Assembly: GCA_010909165.1 (NCBI GenBank)
Contig: VJWM01000118.1
Location: 682,001-746,000, forward strand
Length of the DNA stretch: 64,000 bases
Direction of reading: 5' to 3'
From: Anthoceros angustus
Lineage: Eukaryota > Plantae > Anthocerotophyta
The notes beneath the pieces were generated by a model that did not search any database, was not told the DNA's origin, and was given only the letters and a program-made list of their open reading frames with translations. Below are positions 1 through 64,000 of the stretch, piece by piece. The number at the start of each line of letters is the position of its first letter. The first letter of the stretch is position 1. The translations under genes were made by a program, and so were the position numbers.

Positions 1-763
1 TGGCAAAACACCGTGAAAAGAGTTACAGGAACCGGATAAGTACATGCTCCTCGCTATAGACTAATGGACCAAGAAGACCGAGATTCCACACTTTCTGCGT
101 TGGCCAAAGAATCTTGATGAGGACGTGTATCTGCACGTAGTGGGTTGCATGATCCACAATTATACGACGCAGCAAGAGTGTTTTTGCACTATGCCAATTT
201 GAGGAGATCACGAATCGACAATCGGATTATTCAAGATGTTATTCTTAATTATAAAGGAGTGCTACCCAAAGTGCTCTATTTGCAGCTTGACAACACTTGC
301 CGGGAAAACAAGAACCAGCTGTTGTTTGCGTATTTGAACATGCTAGTTGATATGGGAACTTTTCAAGGTGAAGGTTGGGTTCCTCCTTGTTGGGCACACT
401 CACGACCAAATCGACCAAATGTTCTCTTGCTTTTCCAAAAGCTTGAAGCACAAGGAGGCACACACTCTTCCGCGTTGGCGACATCTTGGTTCATGCATAC
501 ACGCCTACACCGGAGATCAAAGTTTTGCGGAGGTCCGGACTTCCGGTCATATGTATGGCCGATTAGACAAGGCGATGGTCGCCAGCATATTCATCGGTGG
601 TGAGAAAATTGAACAACTTATCTTTCCAGCACGCTTTAAAATCACCAGAGAAGACAAACCGCACTGTGGGTGACGAATTAGGAGCAAGCAATATTCGACA
701 TCGATGTATTGGGAAACCGGCCGGGTTGGAGTTTTTGAAATTTGTCCCTCCAACGACATAACA
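1..763 (+). mobile_element. Partial, frameshifted copy of a DUF7869/Sola-like transposase catalytic region; runs off the window start
   Basis: Translates to YLQLDNTCRENKNQLLFAYLNMLVDMG and KVKVGFLLVGHTHDQIDQMFSCFSK. Near-identical to 1752-2503. Confidence 0.6.
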
Positions 764-3303
764 ACGGTACATCGGGACCCGAGTCAAACTAACAAAGAAA
801 GAGTTTTACGCATGTTATGGGATCGGTTCCTCCGCTACTGCTATGCGTGAAGAGTATATATTGTATGGGGCACAATGACGAGGAAAAAGGGAGGGTCATG
901 AGGAATGCCCTGGGATAGTGTTCGAACCAACCCAATTCATAAGTCCCGTCATGCACTTGGTGCTCTAGCGTGGATGGATAATGCTTTTCGCTTCATGGTG
1001 AAAAGACTTCAACGCAGTGTATAACACGACACCTATACAAATGGAGATATGGTCATTGTACAAACGGCAAAGTGTCAAAGCTCGTCTGCAGCGACGACGC
1101 GTGGTTTTGAAGTTATGGAAATCTAACTTCAGAGTGAAGATTCCCAAATCCAACAGTTCTCGACCGCTCAATATGTGGTTAAAGACCACCATTCGAATAC
1201 AACTGGTTGATCAAGGTAGATATCACTCTACCACTAGTACAACCCATCCGGTGGGAGGAGTTTTTCGTGTTCATCCCATAGTTCGCCGAATGAGTGTATG
1301 GTATGCGGATGGTTCGAAAACACGGAGGCGCCGGCGCCCACCCTCGGATGACCGACTGCTGCATGAAGTTGCTCGAGTACCATGTTTGAAACTCGTTCCT
1401 TGTTCATGTATGGCCCCGGGTTGTAGGTTTGATTGGTCGAGTTGCCGGCGCCGGCCGCCGGCGCCTGGCCCCATCCACCTTCAAACTCGCCAACCATAAT
1501 ATATGACCTAGAAGGTGGACGTTTTGAACATTTTAGATTGGGGAAGATGGTAAATGTATGTGTGAAGAGGTGATAGTCCACGACATTTTGTTGTATGCAA
1601 TGGGTTTCATGGATCTTGTGGTGTGGAAGAAGCGTGTTTGTATGTGAAATTGGGGAACGTGAAAAACTTGGAAGGATGTGACACTTGGAACGTGTTTGTG
1701 CGTAAAAATATCAGCCGTTAGAGGCACACCGCGTGGGAGGAGCGGGAAAAATGGCAAAACACCGTGAAAAGAGTTACAGGAACCGGATAAGTACATGCTC
1801 CTCGCTATAGACGGAATGGACCAAGAAGACCGAGATTCCACACTTTCTGCGTTGGCCAAAGAATCTTGATGAGGATGCCGTGTATCTGCGTAGAGGTTGC
1901 ATGATCCACAATTATACGACGCAAAGAGTGTTTTTGCACTATGCCAATTTGAGGAACGATGCGAATCGACAATCGTGATTATTCAAGATGTTATTCTTAA
2001 TTATAAAGGAGTGCTACCCAAAGTGCTCTATTTGCACTTGACAACACTTGCCGGAAAACAAGAACCAGCTGTTGTTTGCGATTTGAACATGCTAGTTGAT
2101 ATGGGAACTTTTCAAAAGGTGAAGGTTGGGTTCCTCCTTGTTGGGCACACTCACGACCAAATCGACCAAATGTTCTCTTGCTTTTCCAAAAGCTTGAAGC
2201 ACAAGGAGGCACACACTCTTCCGCGTTGGCGACATCGGTTCATGCATACACGCCTACACCGGAGATCAAAGTTTTGGAGGTCCGGACTTCCATATGTATG
2301 GCCGATTAGACAAGGCGATGGTCGCCAGCATATTCATCGTGAGAAAATTGAACAACTTATCTTTCCAGCACGCTTTAAAATCACCAGAAGACAAACCGCA
2401 CTGTAATGGTGATGAATTAGGAGCAAGCAATATTCGACATCGATGTATTGGGAAACCAAGCCGGGTTGGAGTTTTTGAAATTTGTCCCTCCAACGACATA
2501 ACAGACGCCGGCCTCCGGCTCGAGACAAGAAAGGGACGTCGGGGTTATCTCCGGAAGGAGTGGCACATTTGAGAGCGGTCCGGCTGCGCCATATGTGAGG
2601 ACGAATATGGATGGTGGGAAGCATTTGGGTGGACCAAGAAGAAATCGCAATAATCGTGGAGAACAACATTGGGCTCGCACTAGAAGTGCCGTGGAAATGG
2701 TTCTCTCGAATCGGAAGAAACAGCGCAACCACTCCAAGTTCCCGATGAAGCTATCCTAGAGGAGGCGCTAAGAGAACTCCCCACGGATATGTACTTGGGG
2801 CCTTACCGGTTGGGAAGGCGGCGGCAGAAATGGCACGCTTGCATGGAGATGTAAAAGACATAAAGGAAGGATGTTCATCGCAGACCTTGTACCGATACGC
2901 ATAATCGGCCTTTGGATTGGGAAAGTTAATCGTGAGGTTGGATGTGGAAGAGCCTCATTTCACAGTTCCAGTACGAGCACAGATGCATATGAAGGCGGTC
3001 GTGGAAGAATATGTGATTCGGACTTCCACCGAGACTGGGATTGGAAGGAAAAAGGGTGGGAAGGCAAATTTCAAGAATGTTCAAGAAGTCTTCATCAATA
3101 AAACCGTCATCTTGTATTATGGGTTCAGTTTGAATTCCCGTAAACATCTCTATTCCATTGACAAAAAAGCGATCAGGGATAAGTTGAATGAATTGCGGGG
3201 CTTCATCGAGCCAGCCAGCCAAAGTGCACCAGAAGATAGTGACGAAGACGGTGAGGACATCGGGCCCTTGGACATGGAAGGTGTCAATTCGGGAGATGAG
3301 TGA
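764..3303 (+). mobile_element. Degenerate DUF7869/Sola-like DNA transposase gene
   Basis: Fragments in the expected order across frames: AWMDNAFRF, KLWKSNFRVKIPK, IDGMDQ, a QLDN-equivalent, VGHTHDQID, then an acidic C-terminus ending at 3303. The family name comes from motif recall, not a search. Confidence 0.55.
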
Positions 3304-11389: not shown

Positions 11390-14300
11390 CAGTATTGAGC
11401 AGCAGCATTAACAGCATACATGATATAGGGCCTAGTCCAATTAGCCAAATAGAGGAGACAACCCACACAAGCAGCACAAGGGATAGTACGCATATCCTCA
11501 CGCCAAGACGATTGTGGGCAATCCTCGAAGATAACCGAATACCAACCGCCTTGAGATATAGGCCTAATTTGTTTGCATATTAAAACGGGTTAAGATTTCT
11601 CTTACATATTTTTGTTGATGCATAAATATTCGGCCATTAGGTTGATCTCGAAGAATCTGAATCCCGAGACACCATCGAAGAACCCCAATATCCTTCATGT
11701 CAAATTAGGCCCGAAACATATCCTTAACAAAGTTAATTAACTTTATACTAGTGCCAAACATACATATGTCATCAACATATAAAGCTAAAATGACAAAGTT
11801 GGAGCCGTCAGCTAGATAATAAACATTACTATCAGCATGTCTTTGAGTAAAGCCAATAAACTTAAGACGACCATCACACTTATAAAATCATTTGTTAGCA
11901 CTTTGTTTTAAACCATAAAGGCACTTTAGCAGCTTACAAACTAACTCCGCATTAACATCTTCATAACCCTCAGGTTGCCGCATATATATTTCCTCCTCGA
12001 GTTCTCCATACAAGAATGCGGTACAAACATCCATTTAATGGATTTCTAAGTTCAACTATGCGGCTAAAGCTAAAAAGACCCTTAAGGATTGGGTCTTAAC
12101 TACCGGCGAGAAAGTCTCCTGGTAATCCAAGCCAGCTACCTGGCTATAGCCCTTAGCAACTAGCCTAGCTTTATAACGTTCAATAGAACCATCAGCATTT
12201 AATTTGGTCTTAAAGACCCACTTGCAAAGTATGGGTTTACGACCAGGAGGAAGTGGAACTAAATCCCATGTATGATTTTTAAGCAAAGAATTATACTCAC
12301 TTTCTATTGCCTCTTTCCACGCAGCACCATTAGGTCCATCCAAGGCCTCTCGATAGGTAGTAGGTTCACCATCAACTGTCAGAAGAGCATATGCAAGGAG
12401 AGCCCTAGGATCAGTTGAAGGTGAATTAGTGAAAGCAGAAAAATCAGCATGAATAGAATTATCTTCTATATTTGCTTCCACTATTTCTGCATTATCGGGC
12501 ATATTTCCAGCATTAGTATTAGCTAAAATATCCGTAAGTGCCCGTGTACGTGTACGTGGTCTAGATACGGGAGGTTCTGGTGACCAGCGGACGGGAGCCC
12601 TACGCTCCCGTGTAGATGAGCGACGGGGAGGCACCGGCCCAACCACATCTTCAGCCCGCGCTTCATCTCGCGCTCCAAGTTCCACATTATCTCGTTCACC
12701 CGCTTTTCCATGTGCCCCTGCTCGTTCACTCGCGCCACCACTTGCACCCGGGATGCCGTAATCCGATCGAATCGGTGGCGCACCACCTTGAGTGGCATGG
12801 CGGTAGGAGTGAGCCGAGCCTTGCGGGCTGCCTCGGGGATCGCGCCCTCGCCTCAATCCCGCCTAAAGGAAGCATCTCAAGCAATCCTCCGGCGATACAT
12901 GTTCCTTGATTGAGAGCCTGCAGAAGGACGCAGCCTTCTGCAGCCATCCGGCCATGGTCGACTCCACCGATTGCGATGCGGTCTTGTCCTGCACGGGAGC
13001 ATGGGGCAAATGTGGCCATCTTGCAATGTGTCTTGACTCCTCCTCACCGTCTGCGCTCTGCATTGGCAGGGGTATAGGCCCATGTTGCGATGTCACAGGT
13101 CACGTGTGATCAATGTCGAGTTGGAAACGAGAACACTCGAGTTGGCGTTGAAAACCAACATTGGGATCAGGAGGGTCGTCCTCATCATTATCGTCATCTG
13201 GGTATGTGTGTGAACTACCATCTCCAAAGTCAATTCCTGTGTGAACTGTCACCTCCAAAATCTGGATTTTCGTCATAGTTGATTCTGAGGCTGATCGGTG
13301 TCTCCATGTCCGAGACTGCTCCCTTGCCCGCTCAATGATGAGCTTCGTTGAAGACAACACTCCTGCATATGTCGGTTGGCGGGTGGAGGTGAATCTGATC
13401 TATAAGCCGATCTCCATAAGCAAGCGAATATATGTCGGGTTGCCCTGTCGCTAGCTTAGGCCGCCACGGGGAACAAGGGCCCTGGACATCCAAAGACTCG
13501 AGGTGTGCCACCCGTGTTTTCTCTTGTACCATAACTCGAATGGTGTTGTTCGTGACGATATGGTGATGTGTGCATCTTGTTCATCGTAGGTGGTCATGGG
13601 ACTCGGCCCGATGGGGCTTTGGAAGATTGGAGGCATGGAGCATCGTCCTTGCAGCACTTGCTATGTCCCCAATTTTCTTCTCGTCTACCCCATTCTGTTG
13701 GGATGTGTAAGGTACATTGTATTGACGCATAATCCCTAGAGCCTTACACCAGTCCTTGAATTCATTTGAACTGAACTCTCCCCCGTTGTCTGTCCGCAAG
13801 TAGCGAACCTTGGACCCTGTCTGAGATTCAGCCATTATTTTATAGTCTTGGAAGGTACTGAATGCATCACTTTTCCTCTTCAGTGGACACGTGTGTGTGA
13901 ACCTGCTGTAGTCATCAACAATGACCAGGTAATATAGTGCTCCACCAAGGGAGGGTACACTTAATGGCCCACATATATCTGCATGCAGCAATTCTAACAA
14001 ACTGGTTGCCCGTGTAGGGTTGGTGTTAGTGAAGGGTAGCTGCTTGTGCTTTCCCATGACACAAGCCTTACAAACTTGCAGCTTTTTCCCTAGTTTAGGG
14101 AGTCCTTCACCTGTTTCTAAAATAATCAGCCTGTGTGTGACGCAGAAGTTCAGGGAGATTCATGTGGCCAAAACGCAAATGCCACAAGAGAGTTCTTGAA
14201 GAGATAGAGTCTGCCACGCAAGCAACCCTACTTCCACTCGGCTAAGCTGATGAAGAGCCTACAGGTAAGAGCTCTAGAACATACAGGTCATCCTGCTGCT

Positions 14301-29422: not shown

Positions 29423-36312
<6,890 letters not shown>

Positions 36313-51517: not shown

Positions 51518-54500
51518 TCACATGAGGGATGTGACATTGCATCGCAGACTCCCAGCGAGCTCTTCAAAGCTCTTTGATAGCTGCACTTCGTCTAAAGTCC
51601 GTTTGAAGGTGCCCTGCGCGGCCCTAGCCATGTTCTCCAGTAGGTCTGTGCGTTTGTCGTTACCAAACAGGATGGTGTGGAGTACCAGCTTTGGCGCCAG
51701 CTTCTTCATACCTTTTATGAGAGTGATAGGATCCCCAGTTCCAAAATTTCCACCATCACTAAGAAAGATAAGCACGGGAGACCTTGCGGACTTGTCCTTC
51801 TCAGCCGCCCTCAGCAGACCATCAGCTGGCTGTAGGCCGCTGCAATAATCTGTCCATCCACCTGGGTGAAAAGAGAGGAGCTTGTCAACTGCAAACCTTT
51901 TGATGGGCTGCCTCTGCACCACAGTTGCACCAACATTATTGAACAGGATGACCGAAACCAACTCAGGCTCCCTGGTTGTCAGCTTCCCTCGAGCTTTGAC
52001 GAAGCGAACAATTGCTTCATAGACGCATCCCAGTCTGTTGTTGTGCTTCTTAGCTATTTTGGAGAGAGTGGGTTGGATATCCTGCTCAGACATCGATGCT
52101 GACCTGTCTATGATGAAGATGATGTGGTTGGCAGTGTCCCTGACATGGCTACAGGAAAAGGAGTGGCCATCATCTGTTACATATCCAGTGGTGGGCAGAG
52201 CAGAGGATTCCGTGTTTGAAACAGGCTGATGCCACAACTTCTCCCTGCAGTAGCTTCTGGCCCTGTTGGAATCATGGTCGTCTGACCTGCAGAAATGGTT
52301 GCAGAGCTCGAATTCCACGCGATCCTCCTCTTGGCAGGGGTGCTTGAACCTCATGTGGTTCCAGTACGCACTGCATGTGAATTCATCCTTTGGCTCATCA
52401 AGGTTGGGGCCAAACTTCCTGGTTTCATGTCTTACACCCTTGAGGGTGGTCTCTCCACAGACCCCAGACGCTTCATGCCCTGGACACCTCACAAGATGAA
52501 TGTGGCCCCTGCCCTGTGCCTTGCAGTACATGCTGCAGATCTCAGCCATTCCAGACTCTCCCCATGCGTACCTGCGGTCCTGGATATCGATTGCCTCTGC
52601 CTCAGCCACAAAGCTAACACCACGCATGTTACCATGCACTGTGTCGTGCAAGCCTGCATGGCCCATCGCAAGGTGGCAAAAGTACCCACATGCTGGGCAT
52701 CGTTCGCTGCAGAAGTGCACAGCGTCCTCCCGTGTTGTGTGACGATGGGGCCCTTCGTGCCTGTCTGCTCCTGGAGGGATTGCAATGCAGCAACGCTCTC
52801 TCACACCATTCTGCTCGGTAACATCCTCGTACTCGAAAACTGACCTCTTCCCTGCGAAGGTCATGGGGTGCTTGGCCAGCTCCGTCACGATCCGACATGT
52901 CCCAGGAGCCTCACATGCAGCATGGCAGCTGTGCTCGTACCCACAGATGTGCCTGCTATCAGGATGCAACTCATGGAAGTGATCCAAGGCGCCACACTTC
53001 CTGTTGCACCCTGGAAATGTACAGCTAAGAGGGCACGCCTGCTCACTGCATGCGTGCCTCTCATGGTGCCCAAGTTCCAGACGTAACGTACAGGAGTTTC
53101 TGCACGAGGACATAGAACATGTCTCCGCACACAAATGGTGGCTGGTGTTGCACTTGTGCTCTCCCGAATGATGCCGATCCAGAGCACAAAACCGGTTACA
53201 GTTGGAGGACTTGTCAGAAAACGTGCATTCCTGACCACAGGCATGATTCCGTTCCTTGCAGTCATGCGGACCATCGTGGCCATTCAAGTCACCACACTCA
53301 TTCGCCGAATGCTTGGTTGCTGGGTCTGCAGTACAGAAGGTGCAAGGACTGGCACAACCATGAGAGCTTTCCAAACAATCATGCCCATGCGGATGGCCTC
53401 TCTCAAGAGCACAAAGCAGAAAGCAAGTTTGGCACTTGCTGCTACACAGCGACAGTTTCTGTTTCAGCTCTGCCAGCATTGCAAGTGCTTGCGAGCGGAA
53501 GTTTTCAACCTCGCCATCACTCTGGAAGTCCACTGTATTGCAACGCACCCACTCCAACACCCTCCGTCGGCGTCTCTCTACTAAAGCAGCCAAGAAAGCT
53601 TCGAACTCGGCATGCCAGGTAGCATCATCCGCCCCCGTCCTCTGAACCACCTCCACGAATGTACCCTTCAAAGACCGCAGAATGCTTCCAATCACTTGAC
53701 TGTCCTGGGAGGGAAACAGCTGCAAACCTGTGTCCCACTCTCTGAAGCTGTACTTATCCAGCTCAAGAGCATCATCAGCAACGGGCTCCAAAGTGTCAAG
53801 ACTCACCAGCAAATTGTCATGCTCTCCTTGAAGCCTTCCAGAACTAACAGCTGTTTTCAAGTCCTTCCTGAGAGCATCAAGCCGCAGGGTGACTCTTTTA
53901 GTGGCAATTGGAGACCAGTCCTTAGCACTGATCTGGGCTATCATCAGCTTTAAATCAGTTGCCAGGTTGCTTCCGCCCGTATGAACTTCCTTCAACTCCT
54001 CCTCCACTGTCACCGCTAGTTCAACCACGCTCTTATGAAATTCTGGTAGCTGGAAAGGATGCATGGTAGCTATCACTATGTTGCCTCCGTACATCTTGCT
54101 GAGAAAATTCTCTTCTGACCTGCGGCACATCTGCATCATTTTCTTATGAAATTCGCGCCCCAGGGCTTCCACGTCTTCTGCATCCACATCCTTAATAGCC
54201 AGGTAGAAGAGCCCTTGGAACAACCGAGGATCCTGCTTAACCAAGCTGATGCCGTTTTGAAAACGTTGGAACACAGCATCTGTCTCTTTGTCCAGATGGA
54301 AATCCTGGCAGCCAGAAACAAAAACGAAGAGTGGTCATCTCAAATCAATTGTAAGCAAACCAGAGGGCTACCATTTCTCTACCAGAAAAAAGCAGCAAAC
54401 CAGAGGGCTAACCTTCTTGTTGAAGATTGTGATATTGCTCAATGCTGCATTGAGAAGGGACAAGAGCATATCTTCTTGCTCACTTCGCTCGAAGCTCCCC

Positions 54501-57500
54501 AAGCCTTCAAAATCCAGAAGCACGTACAAGCACTTGTCGGTAACTCGTACAGTCATCCAGACGCCGTCTGTGCAACGCCCACCCGCCACATCCAGCAAGG
54601 AACCGCTCAGGTGATTGAGCAGGTAGGATTTCCCACTGCTCTGTTTGCCCATGGATGAGATGACCTTGACAGTGCCGTGCCAGTGACCGAGCACAGCATC
54701 GTACAAGCCGAAGTGGATGCCGTTGGCTAGAGAGACTGCATCAGCGTACTCCAAGTGTGCTGGAAGCTGGAGTCCATTGCTGAGCGGACGCAGGCTGTTG
54801 TTCTCTGCTCGTGCTATCTGTATTGGCACTAAGCATATTAGCTCCCTGATCCATGCCCCAACACCTACTGGAGAACTGGGCTTCCTCCCAAGACGCTTCC
54901 CATAGGATCGGCACCCAGCTAGGGTGTCTGACCTCAGGTGTATGTGCAGATTGGACAGATCTTTGCCTCTCTCTCGTCCCACCCTCTTCAGCGAACTCTC
55001 AACATAGCGAACGTACTGCTTCCCGAGTTCCTTGCTTGGGTCTGACAGTGATCTTCCTCCTAGCACGATGTATACGTAGATGTTTCTCATCTTGTTTACC
55101 AGAGGTGGACTTGTGGAGAACTTTTCGAAGATCATGGAAATGTAGTCCAGAGCAGGGCAAGTCATGGATACAAGGCCTGGCTGCCTGGCTTTCCCTCCCA
55201 TTCCTCTCTTCCCGTGCCTAGCCTCCTGCAGCTGGGAGCCTTGTGGAAGGCTGTCTATCACTTTGGAGCAAATGCCTCTGGAGGGGTTTGATGTGTCCAG
55301 AAGGAGAAGGTGCATCTGGGACTCAAACTTGATGACTGCAGCCTCCAGACTAGCAGGGTCTTCCACCGGAAAGTCTACCTGGACAGTTTTCAAATGGACA
55401 ATTGCGTCCTCCAGACTGAATATCTGCAGCTCGAGAAAACCATGAAGCCTGCCATCCTGCTTGTGCACAAGCTCATCAGTTACCTGCCCTCCAGGCTCAT
55501 TTGCTCCAGAAGCACCGGATGAAGGCGACTGAGCCGAGCTTCCTCCTGCTGTGTAAATCGTGATGAGGCAGGACCCATCACTGGAAACACACGCCTTGAT
55601 TGGGAGGCCTGGAAGAGACGCAGTTCTTGGTTTGATCATGCCAGACTGGCTTATCTCAAATACTCGGACTCTGCAATCAGCGTCGATAAGAAGCAGCTCC
55701 TTCTTCCCTGGAATGAAGAGGATGGCAGTTAACTCTTTACTGCCGGAATAATCGAGCAGAGGCAAGTTGATATCGCACAATTCGATGCGACGTGACAGCT
55801 CATCGTAGCGATAGATTCCGACTTTGCTCAATAACCGATCATACAGAGCCATGTACTTGGAGACCTCGTCGAAGGCGAACAGATCAAACCGTTTGAAGGT
55901 TCGGATGGGTTTGGCATTTGACAGGTTGGAACCCACTTTGGGACACAGGTACACCCTCAGCGATGTGTTCTCAACATCGTGCACGAAGATGAACAACTCT
56001 CCAGACCTTAAAGCAATGACTCGGCACAGCCTGTCTGAGATCAAGTCCAGGTCCATCAGCTTGAGGTACGAAGATGACTGTGGAACGATGACGTGGGCTG
56101 GATCCCGAACCGATTCATCCACATCCTGCTTTGTTGGTGCAAGCTCGGCTAAGCTCCATGTGACTATTGCTGGCTCTGTCACTTCTTCGGAAAACTGGAG
56201 TCCAACCCTTTCCTCCAGCTCCACGTCCTCGAACCTCGTGTTGCCTCTGTTGGTGTTGGAGAGCTGCCCTTCCGTCTTCCTGGTGGAGAGAAGGGAACAC
56301 CTGGAAATGGACAAGCTGGACAGCCCATGCATGTTCTCGGTGGCTTGACTCCTATGTCCCTTCAGGAACTCGGACTCTTCGGATATGAATGACTGCTCAA
56401 GCAACCTGCTATGGCCTTCCAGTTGAAGACGTCTCTGGTCCCTCAGCAATGTCATCACCTTCCTCTTTACCAGCCTTTCCAGCTTGGAAGAAAGATTGTT
56501 ACAGTCCTCTCGATAAACAGCCCTGCAAGCTTCTATCACTTCAGTGACATACGTAGCGCCAGGCAGTTGAAGTGACAAGTACTCCAAGGTCGACTTCCCA
56601 AGCATCTCGCCAACCTTCTGGTTTGAAAACTGGGAGCGAAAATAAGTGGAGGGGGAGGAAGACATTACCGCTTCCTTGACTGAGGTCAGTGTAGCTTGAC
56701 TAACGTCAGCTCCATAGTCCTCAGGGCATTCACATACGCAGCTCAGCCCATCTGCCCTGAAACGCTGAGGCATAACACTTTCTTTCCCATACATGTCCAT
56801 CCACCTCAACATCCCTTCTGCTCCCTGGTCCATCACCTTAACTTGCACTGTGTTAGGCAATTTGAGCAAAGGAAAATCACCCTCGCCCAGAAACACCACC
56901 CTTTCAATGCTCGCGGATGCTATAATGGGTCCTTCAGCACATTCACCTTCATTTGGGAGCAATTGCAGCTTGCAAAAATGTTCATCAGGACCATCTTGCT
57001 TCAACCTTGCTACAAACTCATGAGGGAACAATATAGGTCCCGCCCACTTTGAAGTGACGTTCTTCACACTCTCAACAACAGCTGGACCCAGAATGAGCTC
57101 ATTTGAAGCAGTGTTGACTAGATGAAATTCCGACCCCACAAACAGAAAAGACATGTCATTGCTTGCCTCAGTGACACCCATCCAGATCCTGCAAAGCTCT
57201 CGTTCCACTTCTCGAAGCATGGACCTCTCAACTTCAGCTGGGCCCAATGGAGGGAGATCATCCATATCAGGATCTTCAATTGCCAAATGCATCTCCTCCC
57301 AGCTGAAACAAATACTCCGGTACAGTTTCAGCGCCCTCCTGAACAGACCCAGCAGAACCTTTTCCTCTTCTTTCAGACTGTCCTCCAGCTTGTAAAATTT
57401 CTGCTTGTGCTCGTCTCTCCTTCGATCGAAGCTGTCGATGAGCGACGTATAAGCTTTCCCCACTCCCTCTTTCAGCACACCACAGCGTAGCAGCGTCACA

Positions 57501-58408
57501 AAATCGTCATCGGGAAGCTCAGAAAAGCTAAGCTCGTGAAGTTGGGACCATTCTTGAACAAGCTGTGGGAGCTCCCGGACCTTCACTGTCTTCTCTTGTG
57601 TGATGCGCGCCGTCTTCGGAGGATGCACAGTGGGAAAGAGCAGGGCCAGGCGATGGAGACTTTCACACAGCATAAACCTGAGCTCGCCACTCACAAACAC
57701 ATCCTGATTCTGTACAAAGCATGTGAACCAGTGGGTACCTCTGGACAAGCGGGGCAAGCGGGGAAGATCAATTTGGAAACCGGTGCGCAACTGGAAATCA
57801 CTTCTCAGAGCTATAGGAGGAATGATGATCTTCTGGGTCCTCCTAGCATGCGCAGAAGCAGATTTGGAGTTGGAAGTGGTGTGCACAGTAGTAGTGGGTG
57901 CGATCACAGTGGACTCATCCGCATCATCCAGGCACACATAGACTGTGTCACACAAGTCCACAACATATCTGATAAAATTGCAGGATACATCCTTTCTGGA
58001 GGCTTCTCCCAACCTCTCCCCAGGATGCCAGTAGAAAATGTACAAGACATCTTCAGACAAGACGCCGTAAATCCCAGACTCCAGCTGAATCCTCGGAGAA
58101 ACTAGCTTCAGACCCACAAGAAGATTCATAACCACGTTCTTGCTTCCATAGAGCCCAAGAACATGTACCTTGCTCCTATCTAGAAAGTCGAAATCTAAAA
58201 CAATCTTTCCATGTCTCCAATTTGCTGAGCCCGCAGCCGCCTCATTGCATAGACTGATCACGTTCTCTCTCACAACCATCACCTTGTCCACAATTGTCAA
58301 GTCCAGCTGATCAGGTTGCAAATGTACCAACTTGTGAACTCCTGGCTCCTTCTTCCCACCCACAATCACCCGGTCCCCATTGCTTGCCAGGGGACCCGGT
58401 GCATCCAT
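51518..58408 (-). CDS. Giant (~2260 aa) GBP/VLIG-type GTPase with Cys/His-rich array and C-terminal VWA domain (paralogue A); 2 exons, 58408-54413 and 54304-51518
   Basis: G1 GKQSSGKS (54626-54649), G2 GRCTDG, G3 DFEG, G4-like IKDV. A phase-0 GT-AG intron (54305-54412) joins NKK to DFH. About 44 Cys in imperfect repeats. VWA MIDAS DRSAS (52094-52108) with later T and LSDG. Confidence 0.9.
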
Positions 58409-59130
58409 CCTGCTCTCGGATGCTAGAAGCTATGGTTACGGCCTGGTTCCCAATGGGTTGGTGCTCTGCATAAATCTATCATGTACGTCAAGGGTACACC
58501 ATAGAAGCACGAATTCTTCAAACAAGTCCGGATCCGGGTCCGAAGGGGATTCGTGTGTCAACAGGCCTAGGCCAGTTCAACACAGCCCTGAACCACCCTT
58601 GGAGAAGCTGTCAGCCCAGAGGAATAATCTCCATAACATGACTCTGGCCTGACTGTAAAAAGTTTCCGCGTGGCTGGAAGCCTTCCGTTCGAAGGCAGCA
58701 TCTGAGCCCATCCTGTCAGCGTGAAAAGGTCAACAACCTCGCAAGCAGTGCGTGGACTATCAATGTTCTTCAACATGGGAGCTCGGATATGCTTAGAAGA
58801 TGCTGCTCTCCTTAGCACTGCAATCAGCCGTCATCCACAAGCCTTCCACGGTCCCAAACTGCAGAACTTCAAACTGTGTCAACCCGTTCCTTCGCTTTGA
58901 AGTGACCTTGGAAAGTTGCGTGGGGCCCAAGTTGCCCAACTGGTGCTGCCAAACGCGCTTGAATGAGTCCAGAGCTGCAAACACATGAATGGGTCTGGAC
59001 GTGAGAGCAGCGTCAGTGCTCTCGGATGCAACCAGCATTCTCATCACAGGGGACAAGAGCCAAGGTTACTGAACTTACTGAGTGGCAATTCTAAGGAACT
59101 AGAGGAGATAGGAAGGAGGGAATTGTGGAG
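58409..59130. promoter_or_regulatory. Putative shared bidirectional promoter of the two giant GTPase genes
   Basis: 722 bp between divergent ATGs; contains a repeated TGCTCTCGGATGC motif. Function is inferred from geometry only. Confidence 0.45.
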
Positions 59131-62100
59131 ATGGGGGCTTTGGATCCCGGCGATGCATATCATGTGCTGGAGTTGTCCGAACAGTTTCTGCTTGGCAACG
59201 ACAGTGAGTCCGGATGTGAATCTGGGATCATTCCAAAGAGGAGATTGCTGAATCGGGAGGACTCATCTGAGCATCAAGAAGAAGAAGGGAAGGGGCAGAA
59301 GGAGGTACCTGCGCTGCATAAGCTGATACATCTCAAGGCTGATCAGCTGGATTTGAGCTTTGTGGAGAAGGTGGTCGTCTCCCAGAGTGGCATCATTGAT
59401 TTGTGCAACCTGCTGTTGCCGGGATCAGCCCATTGTATGAAGGATGAGATACTCTTGGATGTCAAGTCCTTGAACATCAACTTGGAGCCGTTGCATGCTG
59501 TGGGCCTGTATGGGAGCAAAGAGGTCTTGGGGCTACTTCTCCAGAGGGTGGGGGTCATGCCATTGGGTCAAGAGTGTCTGGATAGCATGGAGGCAGGGAT
59601 CTATGGAATTCTCTCACACGACTTGATTTATCTCGTCTACTGCCATCCTGGAGGGCGTATGGCAGAGGCCTCCAGAAAGGACGTCTCTTGCAACTTCATT
59701 CGCTACCTAATGGATTTGTGTGGAACCGTTTATGTGTGCTTAGATGCAGAGGATGTGAAGCCCTTCTTGGTGGCCGCAACCACTGGCTCCAGACTTGGTA
59801 GATCCAGAGTGGTAAATCGAACCCAGAGGCTTCAAATCTCTCAGCCCAACACCTCCGAGAATGACTTCGAGCTGCAAAGTGGGTTCCATGTGTTTCCACC
59901 CGGCCTATCGGCTGACATAGCTCCAAGTTCCGTGACGTCTTCCGCCGTTTCTGCATTTGATCTCACGTCCAGGTTCTCCGAAGGTCTGCATCGTTGTACT
60001 GTCCTCACCCCAGTTGTTTGCCCGCCCAGCAAAAGGTATCTAGAACATGAAAAGAATCTTGAGCAGCAGGAGCTACCAGCAATTGTGCAAGACTGGTCTG
60101 CGGCTTACAACCTTGATCTGGAGAAGCTTCCTGATAAGGATCTGTTGCTGCTTCTTCAGTGTGGAAAACTGCAAGCCCACCAAGCATACTTGTCACTGCG
60201 TCGTTCGTTTGAGCTCGGGATAGAGGACAACAAGAACAAGTTCTACGGCCTGGAGGAAACTCTGCGACAGGACCTTAAAAGTCTGCAGTTCATTTTCCAA
60301 GATATTCTCAAGGCTTACCGCAAACTAGTGTACAGATCAGAAGAAGCAGTGTTGGGAAGCAATGCAGATACTCTGAAGGCGAACCGGACTGATGCATCTT
60401 CAAACCAATCTGCTGAGATGATTTACCTGGAGAGGAAGCTCTGCGAGTTCTGGACTGGCAATGAGACCGCTCCGGCTAGTCCACACAGTGCACCATCCCT
60501 GTTGTTTGTTGGTTCCGAGTTCTATTTGGTTGGGACAGACAACAAAGTGATCCCCCTTTCAAGAGACCTTGGGTTCATGTTTGTGGTACAGAGCGTTAGG
60601 CTGTCAGAATCAGCGGCTGGGCCACTCCAACTTCAGCAAGAACTTGTTGCAAGGTCGGTTTCCAAAGACGGCTCTTCGGCTTCGTTTTCTTTCACCGTTC
60701 ACTCTCTTGAGGGTGACTGCCCGAAAGGGCCTATCGTGACTTCCCAGCGGGTCCAAGTCTCTGGTAGGTTTGCATCACCAGCTCACAGGAACGAACAAGA
60801 ATTTTCTTGTACTGTGCAGATCAAATTGAAGGAGCCTTCGTCTGCGGGCATGCTGACCTGGATGCAGTCGTATGATAGAGGGTCCATAGGTTGCCAGGGA
60901 ACAGGCACCCTGCCAAGTGCTGGCACACGATCTGTCTCAGAATATCAAGATGTCTGTAGGAGCCATTCTGCAAAGGTTGAAAGCATGATAAAACGGGAGC
61001 TATGGCCTCTGGTGAGAGAATCCAGACGCTTTGAGATAAATTCGCAGGGAAGCTTGCTCAAGCAATTATTCCAGCAGGAGGAGTCTGTCTTTATGAATAA
61101 CCTTAGGGGACAGCTTAGCAATGCAAGGCCGGATCATCCCAGTCTGTCAATCACCGGATGTCACCTTGTCTCCAGCAATGAGACGAGGTCGTCGTCAGCA
61201 AAGGCGCCTCAAGATGCTGATGACAAACTCGTAGTACGATATGTCTCTGAAGAAATAGAGCAGGCACGCATTAGGTGGAAGGTTGCTGAGCTTGCACCCA
61301 TGAAGACAGATGTGGAGAGAGCAATCACGGACAGAACTCATGTCATTGTCCCTCGCTGTTCAGATGCTCACACGTTGATTGAACTGGACCATAACGTGGA
61401 AAGGCTGACGAAGGTGGTGGCCATCAGGTCTGGAGAGGTGCTGGTGTTTGTGGAAAATGCCAAAGATGTATCCACAAGCGTGTACCTTTGCCCAAAACTT
61501 GGAACAGATGTGACATGCGCAAGTCCACTGAAGGTGTTTCCTAGGCTCTTTCACCTCATTGCTGTCGATGAAACTTCCAAGTTTGTGGCGCTGTATGCAC
61601 GAGAATTCAGCAAGATTAGCATGTACAAGTTTGATGAGGCCTTTCGGAACATGGATAGAAGTAACACTGAGCTCCAGCTCTCGGATTACATTGGAAGTGA
61701 CTTGACTTCCATGATGTTCATCCCTGGGAAGAGGGAAATGGTGCTCATAGACAGCGAAAGTCGAGTAAGCATCTTCCAGATAAGCCAGGGTATGATCAAG
61801 CCTCGAAGTGTTGTGTTGCCTGGACCTCCAGCAAAGGCCCTTGTTACGACTGATGGATCCTGTCTTCTAGCTCTGTATCATGATGGACGGGACATTGATG
61901 AAGATGCCCAGATTCGTCCTGTTGCGGATTCTTCGGCTAGCCTTCTGGAAATACATGTGTATGTGCTGGATGACGCACTGACATACATGAAAACCGTTCA
62001 GGTGGACTCCAAAGAGCTATGTGACAGCAAGAGAATGGAGTCCAGCATTGTGAGCTTCGAGTCACAAATGCACCTCCTGGCTCTCAATGCTGGCAATGCT

Positions 62101-64000
62101 GAGGAGGGAATCCGGTCCAAAAGATTGGACATCACCACCAGTTCCGGGGGTTGCCAACTGAGGGAGGTAAGGAAGGCGAAAACGGAGCCAGGGGATGGAT
62201 CACAGAAAGCTACGACTTGTCCTGCCTTGGACTACATAGGTCAGGTCTTCGAGAAGTACGCAACCAGCCCACCTCTTCAGGAAACCAAGAAGGATCTTTC
62301 CATTCAGCTGGTTCTGGGAGCAGGAATCCAAGAGCAAGCCAAGCAGCCGTGCATAAACTACGTTGACAGTTCGCTGACAACCATCGAACGACACCGAGGC
62401 AAGGATTTCTCAGACCTTGACATCGACATCCGCGCCGACGCGTTTAATGACTGCTTTGATGACGAAGGCCAGCTTGAAGGAAGCAGAGACGATAGAAACC
62501 TCAGAGCCGTGGGAGATTTCACTCAGACCCTTGTATGCTTGATCCCGATACAGATAGCTCGTGCCGAGAAGAACACCTTGCGACCCTTGAGTGATGGCCT
62601 GCAGCTCCCGCCTAACATCGACTACACCGACGCTGTGTCTCTGGCCACTGTCATCCGGTTCGGGTTCTATGACGCAGTGCTAGCGCAGTGGCAGGGACCC
62701 ATCAAAGTCATCTCATCCATGGGAAAACAGAGCAGTGGAAAATCTTACCTTCTCAACCATCTGAGCGGGTCCTTGCTTGATGTGGCTGGAGGACGTTGCA
62801 CCGATGGTGTGTGGATGACCCTGAGGCCAACCCAGAATTGTATGTATGTGCTGCTAGACTTCGAGGGCCTAGGAAGCTTCGAAAGGAGTGAACAAGAAGA
62901 CATGCTGCTTTCCATCCTGAATGCTGCTGTGAGCAACATCACCATCTTCAACAAGAAGGTAACTAGGCCGCTGCATTTGGACAAATTACTGGAATCTCTG
63001 CTTGCATCTTGCTTGAATGGATCCCTGCAAAGGACGAAGGGGCTCCTGTGACAATCTGAAACTTTCTCATCTGCCTTGACGTTGTTCTTGAACCAGGACT
63101 TCCACCTTGATAAGGAGACAGAGGCCGTGTTTCAAAGATTTCAGAGTGGAGTACGCTTGGTGAAGCAGGACACTAAGCTCTTCAAAGGCATGTTCTACAT
63201 GGCTATCAAGGATGTGGACACGGATGATGTGGAAGATCTCAAGGTCGAGTTTGTTAAGAAAATCCGGCACATGTGCAGCAAGTCGGAGGAGAACTTCCTG
63301 GCCAAAATGTATGGAGGCCACGTCGAGATTGCTGCCATGCCTCCTTCCAGAAACAAGAGTTTCATGACAGCATCTGTGCAATCCAAGCAACTGTGGAGGA
63401 CTTGGTAGCAGTTCAGCACAACGGGGGAAATCTAGCAACCGACCTGAAGCTGGTGATGGCTCAGATCTGTGCCAAAGACTGGTCCCCTATTGACACAAAG
63501 CGAGCGGCTCTGAAGGCTGATCTGCTCCGCAAGCACTTCCGCACAGCCATCGCTCTTGGAAGACTGCAGGGGAAGGACGGAGACCCCCTGGTAGACTTCG
63601 ACAGGCAGGAGGCCATACCCGAGCTCCCGGTCCAGCTCCATGGCCAGAGCTTCGAAGTACCAGACACGGACCTGGAGCTCTCTCCTTACCAGGACAGCCA
63701 GGTGGTTGGCAACATACTTGAGATGATGAGGCACAAGTTTGAGCTTGTTTTCCCCAGGTCAGGAACCGATGACGAGGTTTGGCATTCCAACTGAGAAATT
63801 CTTGCTTGCTCTGGCAGACAGACGCCGCATCAGAGTGCTGGACTGGCTGGATCGCAACACATCAGAGTTCCAAAAGAATGCAGACGTGCAAACCCTGCGC
63901 ATGAAGGCTGTTGCAATGCTTGCAGAGCTGAAGCAAACCCTGTCTCTTTGCAGCTGCAAATGCCAGATCTGCTTCCTTCGCTGTGTTCTTGAAAAGTCTC
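59131..64000 (+). CDS. Paralogue B of the giant GTPase gene; exon 1 59131-62958, exon 2 from 63097; two apparent frameshifts; runs off the window end
   Basis: Collinear with A (EASRKDVSCNFIRY, SLLFVGSEF, LVCLIPIQIARAE, GKQSSGKSYLLNHLSGSLLDVAGGRCTDGVWM). Same NKK/DFH intron. Reaches the first Cys repeat (CSCKCQICFLRC) at the window edge. Confidence 0.85.

Follow-up and report, generated by a model that had tools for sequence, protein, structure and literature searches.

The minus strand of the window (the whole 64,000-nucleotide stretch of DNA analyzed here) carries one intact, transcribed gene at 51518..58408, whose two exons encode a giant GTPase of 2260 codons and end in a stop codon at 51518-51520. 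By its motifs and profile matches, the product is a GTP switch within the GBP/Sey1-RHD3/VLIG class of the dynamin superfamily, and its hydropathy indicates a soluble protein. Structural models predict the domain order, with a split degenerate G fold that harbors a propeller insertion, a catalytic G domain, a stalk, a Cys/His block and a VWA domain. We regard the gene structure and the fold assignment as very probably correct. The whole is best explained, with a likelihood slightly better than even, as a GBP/VLIG-class GTP switch that acts as an oligomerizing scaffold, possibly in cell-autonomous defense.

A single transcribed gene of two exons

Two long open reading frames are found here on the minus strand, at 54368-58408 and 51518-54274. 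On the same strand, exon 1 runs over 54413-58408 and encodes 1332 aa, and exon 2 runs over 51518-54304 and encodes 928 aa followed by the stop. The sole intron (54305..54412, minus strand, GT..AG, phase 0) is 108 nt long, contains an in-frame stop, and cuts the G domain just past ...ITIFNKK. The figure of 2260 aa is the sum of exon 1 (1332) and exon 2 (928), which were searched separately; analyses of the whole G domain used natural full-length homologs, with the two pieces from the window entered as separate rows (alignment A3).

Homologs and transcripts both join the exons. On Cryptomeria protein P0002, the alignment of exon 1 stops at aa 1416 and that of exon 2 picks up at aa 1417. Contigs from four runs (X1, X2, X9 and X18), representing three related species, have exactly the 108-nt intron removed, and the intron joint reads CT..AC on the plus strand. 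In run X18, a single 7801-nt contig extends across 52500-58491, with the 108-nt joint as its only gap. Colinearity with single homologs and the intron-less contigs from three species rule out two separate genes, a possibility that had been raised in the initial annotation. The length of the reading frames and their conservation over 59 homologs are far beyond chance.

The gene could also be a decaying paralog of an expanded family, transcribed but with no function of its own. In favor of this, the family is multicopy in this genome, and the indels of a sister-species contig in run X9 add up to −14 nt; one of them, a +1 at 55399, would break the reading frame. In the window, however, the exons of 1332 and 928 codons are uninterrupted, and the catalytic, zinc-ligand and MIDAS positions are all intact. 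Indels in species B are all multiples of 3, keeping the frame, and splicing is seen in all runs. Within the Cys/His array, 27 of the 38 listed differences to a sister species are synonymous and 11 are not, and this 27:11 excess argues for purifying selection. We consider decay very improbable. For the copy in the window, open exons, conserved positions and the synonymous excess rule out a pseudogene. Being intact and expressed, the gene is accessible to cloning and direct testing.

The catalytic G domain and a candidate second G fold

The catalytic large G domain lies at 53990..54691 (minus strand), and comprises exon-1 aa 1240-1332 and exon-2 aa 1-105, with the intron between them. All four motifs listed in the initial annotation are present in the translations, on the minus strand: G1 GKQSSGKS (54626-54649, exon-1 aa 1254-1261), G2 GRCT (54569-54580, exon-1 aa 1277), G3 DFEG (54503-54514, exon-1 aa 1299) and the G4-like (A)IKD (54188-54196, exon-2 aa 37-39). 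The P-loop conforms to GxxxxGK[ST], and residues G, Q, G, K and S of GKQSSGKS are nearly invariant (56 rows). Also nearly invariant in the family alignment are R, C, T, D, G and W of RCTDGVW, as well as DFEG. For G4, K38 is kept in 45/59 rows and D39 in 57/59.

The top-scoring Pfam G-domain family is URGCP_GTPase (PF25683), which matches the exon-1 piece with 36.7 bits, below the gathering score of 55, and over model positions 188-285 of 396. Full-length homologs give 31–37 bits with this model. RHD3 (24, cut-off 42.4) also falls below its threshold, and GBP (22.8 bits, cut-off 21.1) barely exceeds it. The E-values are 2.7e-9, 2.9e-5 and 5.8e-5 for URGCP_GTPase, RHD3 and GBP, respectively. Across the 56 family rows, matches are seen to RHD3 in 53/56, to URGCP in 52/56 and to GBP in 48/56, and the family profile identifies GBP5 (2.6e-14) and Sey1 (2.4e-11) in the PDB. 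Together, the Pfam matches and the profile hits to GBP5 and Sey1 bear out the earlier placement of the P-loop in the GBP/atlastin/VLIG branch.

Upstream of this domain, two segments of exon 1 together seem to make up a degenerate second G fold, as seen in a single AF2 model (pLDDT 78) with range-only alignments. The first half spans aa 24-170 (57899..58339, minus strand) and is modeled with a pLDDT of about 90; the second, an alpha/beta segment in AF2, spans aa 1085-1198 (54815..55156, minus strand). Within the first half, GLYGSKN (exon-1 aa 85-91) represents a shortened P-loop-like segment, for which the family consensus is GxxGxK and not Walker A. VIA matches over model residues 19/23..1198 include Sey1p (Z 16.2), GBP1 (Z 14.6), atlastin-1 (Z 14.3) and SMG9 (Z 14.2). 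GBP2 is matched too (Z 14–16, residues 19-1199), and the G-domain structural matches stop at model residues 1195-1199. Look-alikes identified by a protein language model in the atlas belong solely to GBP/RHD3/SMG9/URGCP-type clusters, with scores of 0.81–0.87 (all <0.9). Comparison of the two pseudo-G pieces with the true G domain by hhalign was not significant (E 0.28 and 0.075). Still, these two short local matches run in the order that a duplication would give.

The propeller appears to sit inside this degenerate G fold, within an insertion of ~900 residues. Its main body (55253..56320, minus strand, exon-1 aa 697-1052) has about 28 strands, with pLDDT >90 in AF2. A propeller-like region had been proposed from three beta-rich strings; these are present at exon-1 aa 842, 895 and 939, inside the propeller, and the proposal gains support from the AF2 model, Foldseek (E 1e-6, WD40 and NHL) and VIA (Z 17). 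The Foldseek matches include the Vps11 WD40 domain (E 9.7e-7) and the Brat NHL domain (TMt 0.53, in a range of 0.45–0.53), while VIA returns the NHL domain of Mei-P26 (Z 17.1, 258 aligned), Brat (Z 17.0) and Sec12 (Z 15.5). At the sequence level, the family profile matches the Prp19 WD40 domain weakly (E 0.002). Pfam searches at E up to 10 gave no match to WD40 or NHL repeats, and nothing useful for exon-1 aa 1-700 or aa 701-1233.

Preceding the main body are divergent insert modules (56339..57799, minus strand, exon-1 aa 204-690, by AF2 secondary structure), which contain propeller-joining strands (204-294), long helices (300-410 and 531-690) and a beta module (420-530). Structural alignments to propellers begin at about exon-1 aa 204. 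These modules are the least conserved part of the protein, with mean identities of 14–20% to homologs and 34–38% to the neighboring paralog. The initial annotation had overlooked the N-terminal second G fold with its inserted propeller. A propeller within a degenerate second G fold would, if the model holds, be a new feature; we found no description of one.

Stalk, Cys/His block and VWA domain

Three elements that the initial annotation placed after the GTPase, a helical stalk, a Cys/His array and a terminal VWA with intact MIDAS, are all upheld: the first by the exon-2 AF2 model (928 residues, pLDDT 88), the second by counts and conservation across homologs, and the third by structure, profile and conserved ligands. 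The stalk or middle region occupies 53456..53989 (minus strand, exon-2 aa 106-283) and is helical from about aa 87, with helices at exon-2 aa 111-127, 133-155, 205-217, 224-256 and 264-283 (pLDDT about 85–95).

The Cys/His array follows at 52145..53452 (minus strand, exon-2 aa 285-720) and is ~440 residues long. Between exon-2 aa 287 and 718 there are 85 Cys and His residues, and ~70 of those in the array are kept in at least 80% of 56 homologs. These ~70 conserved residues could make ~17 four-ligand zinc sites. Units of H-x-C-x3-C recur along the array, with pLDDT about 90. No Pfam model matches the array at E up to 10, zf-NF-X1 and other zinc-finger models included. A PDB sequence search gave nothing with exon 2 alone and, with the A1 profile, matches to the VWA but none to the array, and a feature search of the ESM atlas with the zinc block gave no usable match. 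The match lists of Foldseek and VIA for the whole 928-residue exon-2 model were taken up by the VWA. The array appears to be a very large, conserved, putative zinc-binding block with no matching Pfam family, and we found no description of it.

The C-terminal VWA domain (51545..52135, minus strand, exon-2 aa 724-920) has a complete MIDAS, with DRSASMS at 52088-52108 (minus strand, exon-2 aa 733). The MIDAS ligands D733-x-S735-x-S737, T818 and D850 are kept in about 45/46 homologs that have the VWA. With the single sequence, Pfam VWA_2 matches at E 8.2e-6, its 26.8 bits lying just below the cut-off of 27. The profile search of the PDB gives E 7.3e-17 for the VWA, and structural matches are found by Foldseek (E 3.6e-10) and VIA (4fx5, Z 23.3, 176 aligned, rmsd 1.9; TFIIH p44, Z 23.0). 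The only NCBIfam match, to a cobaltochelatase VWA, is at noise level.

The zinc block might instead bind RNA or DNA, like NFX1/ZNFX1-type arrays, with the GTPase serving as a regulated clamp. Such a nucleic-acid or chromatin factor could sense foreign nucleic acid or take part in RNA surveillance. NFX1-type fingers have the consensus C-x(1-6)-H-x-C-x3-C-[HC]-x(3-4)-[HC]-x(1-10)-C, and the half-repeat spacing here, C-x4-H-x-C-x3-C, recalls them; in addition, the candidate second G fold has a likeness to SMG9, which belongs to the SMG8-SMG9 surveillance complex, and TFIIH p44 is among the VWA matches. However, zf-NF-X1 and all other zinc-finger Pfam models fail at E up to 10, the block has no PDB or atlas match, and the similarities to SMG9 and p44 are generic fold matches. 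We judge this alternative improbable. Membership among NFX1-type fingers was rejected, as Pfam zf-NF-X1 fails and only the first half-pattern recurs.

A Kyte-Doolittle scan revealed no transmembrane-like segment: the maximum 19-residue mean, 1.55, belongs to an exon-1 strand that is buried, and the maximum for exon 2 is 0.91. This agrees with the earlier remark that no C-terminal transmembrane pair is evident, and an atlastin/RHD3-like membrane anchor is ruled out by hydropathy. As a structural summary, the initial annotation's picture of a soluble, GTP-driven machine whose tip binds ligands through a metal is fair, with GTP hydrolysis and ligand binding as putative activities.

Family distribution, proposed role and known systems

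Homologs occur in non-flowering land plants, streptophyte algae, amoebozoans, oomycetes, dinoflagellates, a euglenozoan, fungi and sponges; none were seen among flowering plants. The profile of the zinc array (A4) matches 1134 cluster representatives (50% identity), 405 of them at E 1e-30 or better. Hence the architecture, which the initial annotation called unusual, is neither rare nor lineage-specific; it is the standard of an old, large family that spans most eukaryotic supergroups. Literature searches on VLIG in plants, on VLIG/GBP evolution, and on vWA together with GBP/dynamin-like and zinc found no paper on this family, and Kaur/Aravind 2021 mentions GBP merely in passing.

A paralog adjoins the gene head-to-head. 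Its exon 1 (59125..63051, plus strand) begins about 720 bp from the ATG of the giant GTPase gene, is 40% identical across the entire exon 1 and has the same end, ...FNKK (BLASTP). The intron is in the same position, and run X1 contains an 8035-nt contig over the 5' side of this paralog. The family has multiple copies in non-flowering plants; in Cryptomeria, >15 paralogs lie on one chromosome-scale record. Relatives carry add-on domains, namely CARD (the sponge Sycon), three AAA domains (Mesostigma), a kinase-like domain, ART (Entosiphon) and RING/TRIM.

The age of the family and the purifying selection on its core could point to a housekeeping remodeler of membranes or organelles, in which GTP-dependent dimerization of G domains tethers or shapes membranes, as in RHD3/Sey1/atlastin. 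The VWA and zinc block would then be an adaptor to a membrane protein, replacing the transmembrane anchor. The P-loop and switch motifs fit Sey1/RHD3 and GBP about equally well (Sey1 2.4e-11; RHD3 53/56), and Sey1p is the top structural match for the candidate second G fold. On the other hand, the C-terminal segment is neither transmembrane nor amphipathic, and absence from the flowering plants searched, with a patchy distribution in eukaryotes, would be unusual for an essential remodeler. Nor does such a role fit well with gene clusters that are multicopy and lineage-specific, or with add-on domains that vary. A remodeling role therefore strikes us as unlikely.

We favor the GBP/VLIG-class scaffold. 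In our proposal, GTP binding by the catalytic G domain would drive G–G pairing, either with the internal pseudo-G domain or with another molecule in trans, as GBPs do and GVIN1 is predicted to do. The stalk would relay the change in the G domain and thereby control assembly of a large oligomer. The propeller and variable inserts may recognize a partner or target, while the rigid zinc block would display the VWA, whose MIDAS metal could clamp an acidic residue on a ligand protein. That the protein is a GTP-driven oligomerizing scaffold seems fairly probable. Its most likely biological role, at somewhat less than an even chance, is in cell-autonomous defense or the sensing of conflict, where it would build scaffolds comparable to the coats of animal GBP/GVIN1. 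Purifying selection and the deeply conserved core are compatible with a housekeeping function no less than with immunity.

As to hints of defense, the head-to-head paralog, the Cryptomeria copies and the immune/conflict-type add-on domains are circumstantial. To our knowledge, flowering plants, with their NLRs and receptor kinases, account for almost all that is understood of plant cell-autonomous immunity. The coating of bacteria by giant GBP/VLIG GTPases of animals is a very recent finding. A bolder and rather doubtful reading makes the family a non-animal counterpart of VLIG/GVIN1, a tandem-G immune sensor and scaffold of the non-NLR kind, as old as LECA and lost from angiosperms as a system. 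The propeller in the dead G domain would be the recognition module, and the zinc block and MIDAS VWA the output, in hosts that include non-flowering plants, fungi, oomycetes, amoebae and sponges. If the defense reading is true, the family would add a new branch to the immunity of plants and protists and tie it in evolution to the interferon-induced GTPases of animals. If it is false, the putative zinc block and the predicted pseudo-G fold split by a propeller would still be new structural biology.

Comparison with known systems places these modules in context. Intracellular MIDAS VWAs (TFIIH p44/Ssl1, Rpn10, integrin I domains) share the fold (Z 20–23) and the DxSxS...T...D ligands, but none of the MIDAS VWA proteins found joins the VWA to a GBP-class GTPase and a putative zinc block of ~17 sites. 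Similarity to RHD3/Sey1/atlastin lies in the family-profile match to Sey1 and in Sey1p as top structural match for the candidate second G fold, whereas their defining C-terminal transmembrane pair is absent here. With GBP1/2/5 and the plant GBP-like proteins, the protein shares the T-x-G-V-W switch I and DxEG, with [A/T]-x-[K/R]-D replacing NKxD, and, as in GBPs, a helical region lies behind the G domain. It differs from GBPs in having Ser (GKQSSGKS) at the arginine finger position of the GBP1 P-loop motif. It is also four times larger than GBPs, is without a CaaX box, and adds the propeller, the predicted pseudo-G fold, the putative zinc block and the VWA.

The immune GTPases of the GBP and GVIN1 types are the nearest characterized relatives of this family (bioRxiv 10.1101/2025.03.24.645074). 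GVIN1 coats Burkholderia, and in an AlphaFold3 model of the human protein, with the order N-terminal domain, LG, linker, LG, C-terminal domain, dimerization is predicted to occur through the two LG domains (Guo et al. 2025, bioRxiv 10.1101/2025.03.24.645074). Like VLIG/GVIN1/URGCP, the present protein is giant, soluble and encoded by a nearly intron-less gene, and the genes are multicopy and clustered. With the candidate pseudo-G fold and the G domain, the chain may also have two large-G folds with other modules between them, as the GVIN1 model does. In contrast to VLIG/GVIN1/URGCP, the first G fold appears degenerate, with the propeller inserted, and the chain continues into a putative zinc block and a VWA, neither of which is known from GVIN1 or URGCP.

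One gene in two exons

The gene interval (51518–58408, minus strand) holds two long minus-strand open reading frames, 54368–58408 and 51518–54274. Exon 1 (54413–58408; 1332 codons, ending ITIFNKK) and exon 2 (51518–54304; 928 codons plus stop, beginning DFHLDKET) are separated by a phase-0 GT..AG intron of 108 nt (54305–54412, minus strand) with an in-frame stop inside it. The exon codons sum to a predicted product of 2260 aa, in agreement with the size of ∼2260 aa given in the initial annotation. Residues are numbered separately within each exon here.

Two independent lines of evidence establish that the two exons form one gene. First, in a BLASTP comparison with a Cryptomeria homologue, P0002 (2299 aa), exon 1 ends at residue 1416 and exon 2 begins at residue 1417, so that the two alignments abut exactly. 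Second, we compared public contigs of four sequencing runs with the window over 52500–58499, and an exact 108-nt skip is present in contigs of all four. Run X1 derives from the same species (0 mismatches), X2 and X18 from a second species (∼95% identity), and X9 from a third (∼94%). A 7801-nt contig from X18 covers the whole compared stretch, with the 108-nt skip as its sole joint. That these runs are RNA is our guess; the contigs resemble spliced mRNA, because a GT..AG intron is removed precisely in three species. Transcripts thus fail to show two separate genes, the outcome that the initial annotation had named as telling against its model, and show the joint in every run.

Relative to the second species, indels are multiples of three throughout, and 27 of the 38 substitutions listed in 52574–53420 are synonymous (11 are not). 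Together with the contig joints, these patterns indicate that the gene is expressed and under purifying selection.

The X9 contig of the third species carries a 1-nt insertion at 55399 (exon-1 codon ∼1004, within the propeller), and its indels total −14 nt, which would shift the frame inside the propeller. Either this is an assembly error or the orthologue is decaying in that species. Both sister-species contigs also extend past 58491, by 77 nt in X9 and by at least 255 nt in X18 (364 from contig size), with letters dissimilar to the window; the extension reflects either divergence of the 5′ UTR or splicing of a 5′ UTR intron that lies upstream of the start codon at 58408.

Domains of the predicted protein

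Every string quoted in the initial annotation was found where expected: the G1 (GKQSSGKS), G2 (GRCT) and G3 (DFEG) motifs at exon-1 residues 1254, 1277 and 1299, G4 (AIKD) at exon-2 residues 36–39, three beta-rich strings at exon-1 residues 842, 895 and 939, and the metal ion-dependent adhesion site (MIDAS; DRSASMS) at exon-2 residue 733. In homology searches each exon was used singly, with natural full-length homologues wherever the whole G domain was required. Exon-1 residues 1246–1330 matched the Pfam families URGCP_GTPase (2.7e-9), RHD3 (2.9e-5) and GBP (5.8e-5), of which GBP alone passed the curated cut-off, and narrowly. A G-domain profile of 56 rows, 54 of them natural homologues and two the pieces from the window, matched GBP5 (2.6e-14), GBP2, GBP1 and Sey1p (2.4e-11) in the PDB, with no other convincing match there. 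Nearly all of its rows match Pfam RHD3 (53/56), URGCP (52/56) or GBP (48/56), and the nucleotide-binding motifs are close to invariant across homologues. These matches bear out the earlier assignment to the GBP/atlastin/VLIG branch, and sequence comparison places the G domain in a separate subfamily of the GB1/RHD3-type class. No stretch has the hydrophobicity expected of a membrane helix (maximum 19-residue mean hydropathy, 1.55), consistent with the reported lack of a C-terminal transmembrane pair. A housekeeping role at membranes seems improbable to us.

An AlphaFold2 model of exon 2 (59-row alignment, mean pLDDT 88.3) assigns residues ∼1–283 to the rest of the G domain plus a helical region, where a stalk following the GTPase had been proposed. 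Next come the Cys/His block (residues 285–720), confidently placed and chiefly non-regular, and a Rossmann-like VWA domain (residues 726–919). The VWA was recovered by Foldseek (3.6e-10), by profile search (7.3e-17) and by VIA-align (4fx5, Z 23.3; TFIIH p44, Z 23.0). Its MIDAS, described earlier as intact, has all five ligands (D733, S735, S737, T818 and D850), which are kept in ∼45 of 46 homologues with a VWA.

The block itself, the Cys/His array noted previously, contains 85 Cys/His, and H-x-C-x3-C units recur in it. In a set of 56 sequences that spans several supergroups of eukaryotes, ∼70 of these residues are conserved in at least 80%, enough for ∼17 putative four-ligand zinc sites. Even with E values up to 10 allowed, the block had no Pfam match, and it matched no PDB sequence and no named cluster in the atlas; the lists from fold searches with the exon-2 model (Foldseek and VIA-align) were both taken up by VWA matches. 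We give a function linked to nucleic acids only a slim chance, much as we do a membrane role.

Exon 1 was modelled over residues 1–1200 (AlphaFold2, 48 rows, mean pLDDT 78.3). Residues 697–1052 form ∼28 strands with pLDDT >90. With this model, Foldseek returned WD40 and NHL propellers (Vps11, 9.7e-7; Brat NHL, TMt 0.53), VIA-align returned NHL propellers at Z 17 over ∼258 aligned residues, and the family profile weakly matched the Prp19 WD40 domain (E 0.002). The region called propeller-like from sequence is therefore also a propeller in predicted structure. Since the propeller alignments start near residue 204, strands in 204–294 probably contribute to it. If so, the helical and beta modules at residues 300–690, which are strongly divergent (14–20% identity to homologues), would be an insert within the propeller.

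VIA-align of the same model also matched large-G-domain structures, over a range of ∼20 to ∼1198: Sey1p (Z 16.2, 227 residues aligned, rmsd 3.6), GBP1 (Z 14.6, 208 residues), Atlastin-1 (Z 14.3, 220 residues), the GBP2 G domain (Z 14.2, 219 residues) and SMG9 (Z 14.2, 202 residues). Residues 24–170 and 1085–1198 are alpha/beta, with a combined size and strand–helix order about right for one large-G domain. A protein-language-model search with residues 15–175 returned only GBP, RHD3, MMR_HSR1, SMG9 and URGCP clusters, at 0.81–0.87, below the reliability line and hence a lead only. The sequence at the P-loop position is GLYGSKN; the consensus of the family, GxxGxK, is a Walker A motif minus two residues, and its Lys is not conserved beyond land plants. 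Comparison of these pieces with the true G domain by hhalign gave no significant match; two short, non-significant local matches (VYVCLDDAD with LYVLLDFEG; ISMIFEKFSTSPPLV with AVFQRFQNGISLV) fall in an order colinear with an old duplication. We consider it reasonably probable that the exon-1 N-terminus is part of a degenerate second G fold into which the propeller is inserted. The domains named in the initial annotation hold, and what its architecture missed is this candidate fold around the propeller.

Relatives and genomic neighbourhood

Word searches were run with exon 1, its most conserved 163 residues and the zinc block, which together span lengths of 510–2331 aa. The same architecture was found in land plants (Ginkgo, Cryptomeria, Taxus, ferns, Selaginella, a moss and liverworts), streptophyte algae (Klebsormidium, Mesostigma), Amoebozoa (Pelomyxa, Stereomyxa), oomycetes, dinoflagellates, Chromera, the sponge Oscarella and the fungi Paraglomus and Phellinidium. 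None was found in flowering plants with any of the three queries. Exon 2 aligns end to end (residues 1–928) with proteins of most of these groups. An exhaustive search with the zinc-block profile gave 1134 cluster representatives (E ≤ 1e-30 for 405), with the block nearly always at residues ∼1400–2400 of proteins 2000–3000 aa long. In a quick tree, the window protein falls within a land-plant clade that has full support, where its nearest neighbours are sequences from moss, liverwort and lycophyte. The gene belongs to an ancient family, and the layout first described as unusual is unique neither to this locus nor to this organism.

Some relatives differ in domain content. Two sponge proteins, P0093 (Sycon ciliatum, 3777 aa, with an N-terminal CARD and repeated zinc blocks) and P0171, have a CARD (24.8 bits; Pfam cut-off 23.9), and the zinc-block profile matches them in as many as nine stretches, with no GTPase among their Pfam matches; the block can thus exist without a G domain, in a death-fold context. 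In P0098 (Mesostigma viride, 3438 aa), three AAA ATPase modules with AAA_lid_6 come after the GTPase–zinc–VWA core. Other relatives carry a kinase-like tail or RING/TRIM domains, and one from Entosiphon an ADP-ribosyltransferase domain (precomputed Pfam list).

Within the window, a paralogue lies head to head with the gene (59125–63051 and on to the window end, plus strand). It shows 40% identity across all of exon 1 (BLASTP) and shares the intron position. Starting upstream on the opposite strand, it has its ATG ∼720 bp from that of the giant GTPase, close enough that one bidirectional promoter may serve both; the paralogue too is transcribed (8035-nt contig, run X1). That the giant GTPase gene is simply redundant seems very unlikely to us. 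In Cryptomeria, a single chromosome-scale record carries more than 15 paralogues. Elsewhere in the window lie a Ty1/copia-type reverse transcriptase ORF fragment (12056–12856, minus strand; RVT_2, 3.7e-22) and an exon-sized ORF with a match to RNA polymerase Rpb1 domain 5 (31077–31718, minus strand; 3.3e-17). The latter belongs to an intron-rich gene, whereas the giant GTPase genes are nearly intron-less.

Possible function and known giant GTPases

The gene at this locus is intact and expressed. It codes for a soluble giant GTPase that falls in the GBP/Sey1/VLIG class and combines a propeller, a stalk, a large block of conserved Cys/His and a VWA domain with a MIDAS. How it works we infer from these parts. 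GTP would control G–G pairing, either internally with the putative pseudo-G fold or in trans, and this pairing would drive assembly. Target recognition would fall to the propeller with its inserts, and the zinc block together with the VWA would bind a protein ligand via the MIDAS metal. The initial annotation is confirmed in what it observed and partly supported in its interpretation, a soluble GTP-driven machine with a metal-dependent ligand-binding tip. A role in defence or conflict is our best guess, a tentative one that we hold at somewhat less than even chances. It draws on kinship with immune GTPases, on the clustering of family genes in multiple copies, on the extra domains that relatives carry and on a distribution that is patchy.

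Full-text literature searches found no paper describing a giant GTPase–zinc block–VWA family. The closest characterized protein is human GVIN1, for which an AlphaFold3 model has two LG domains with a helical linker between them and predicted LG dimerization (Guo et al., bioRxiv 10.1101/2025.03.24.645074). A likeness may lie in the pair: two LG domains in the published model, and here a G domain plus a putative pseudo-G fold. The giant GTPase falls among the known giant GTPases of the GBP/VLIG class as a variant.
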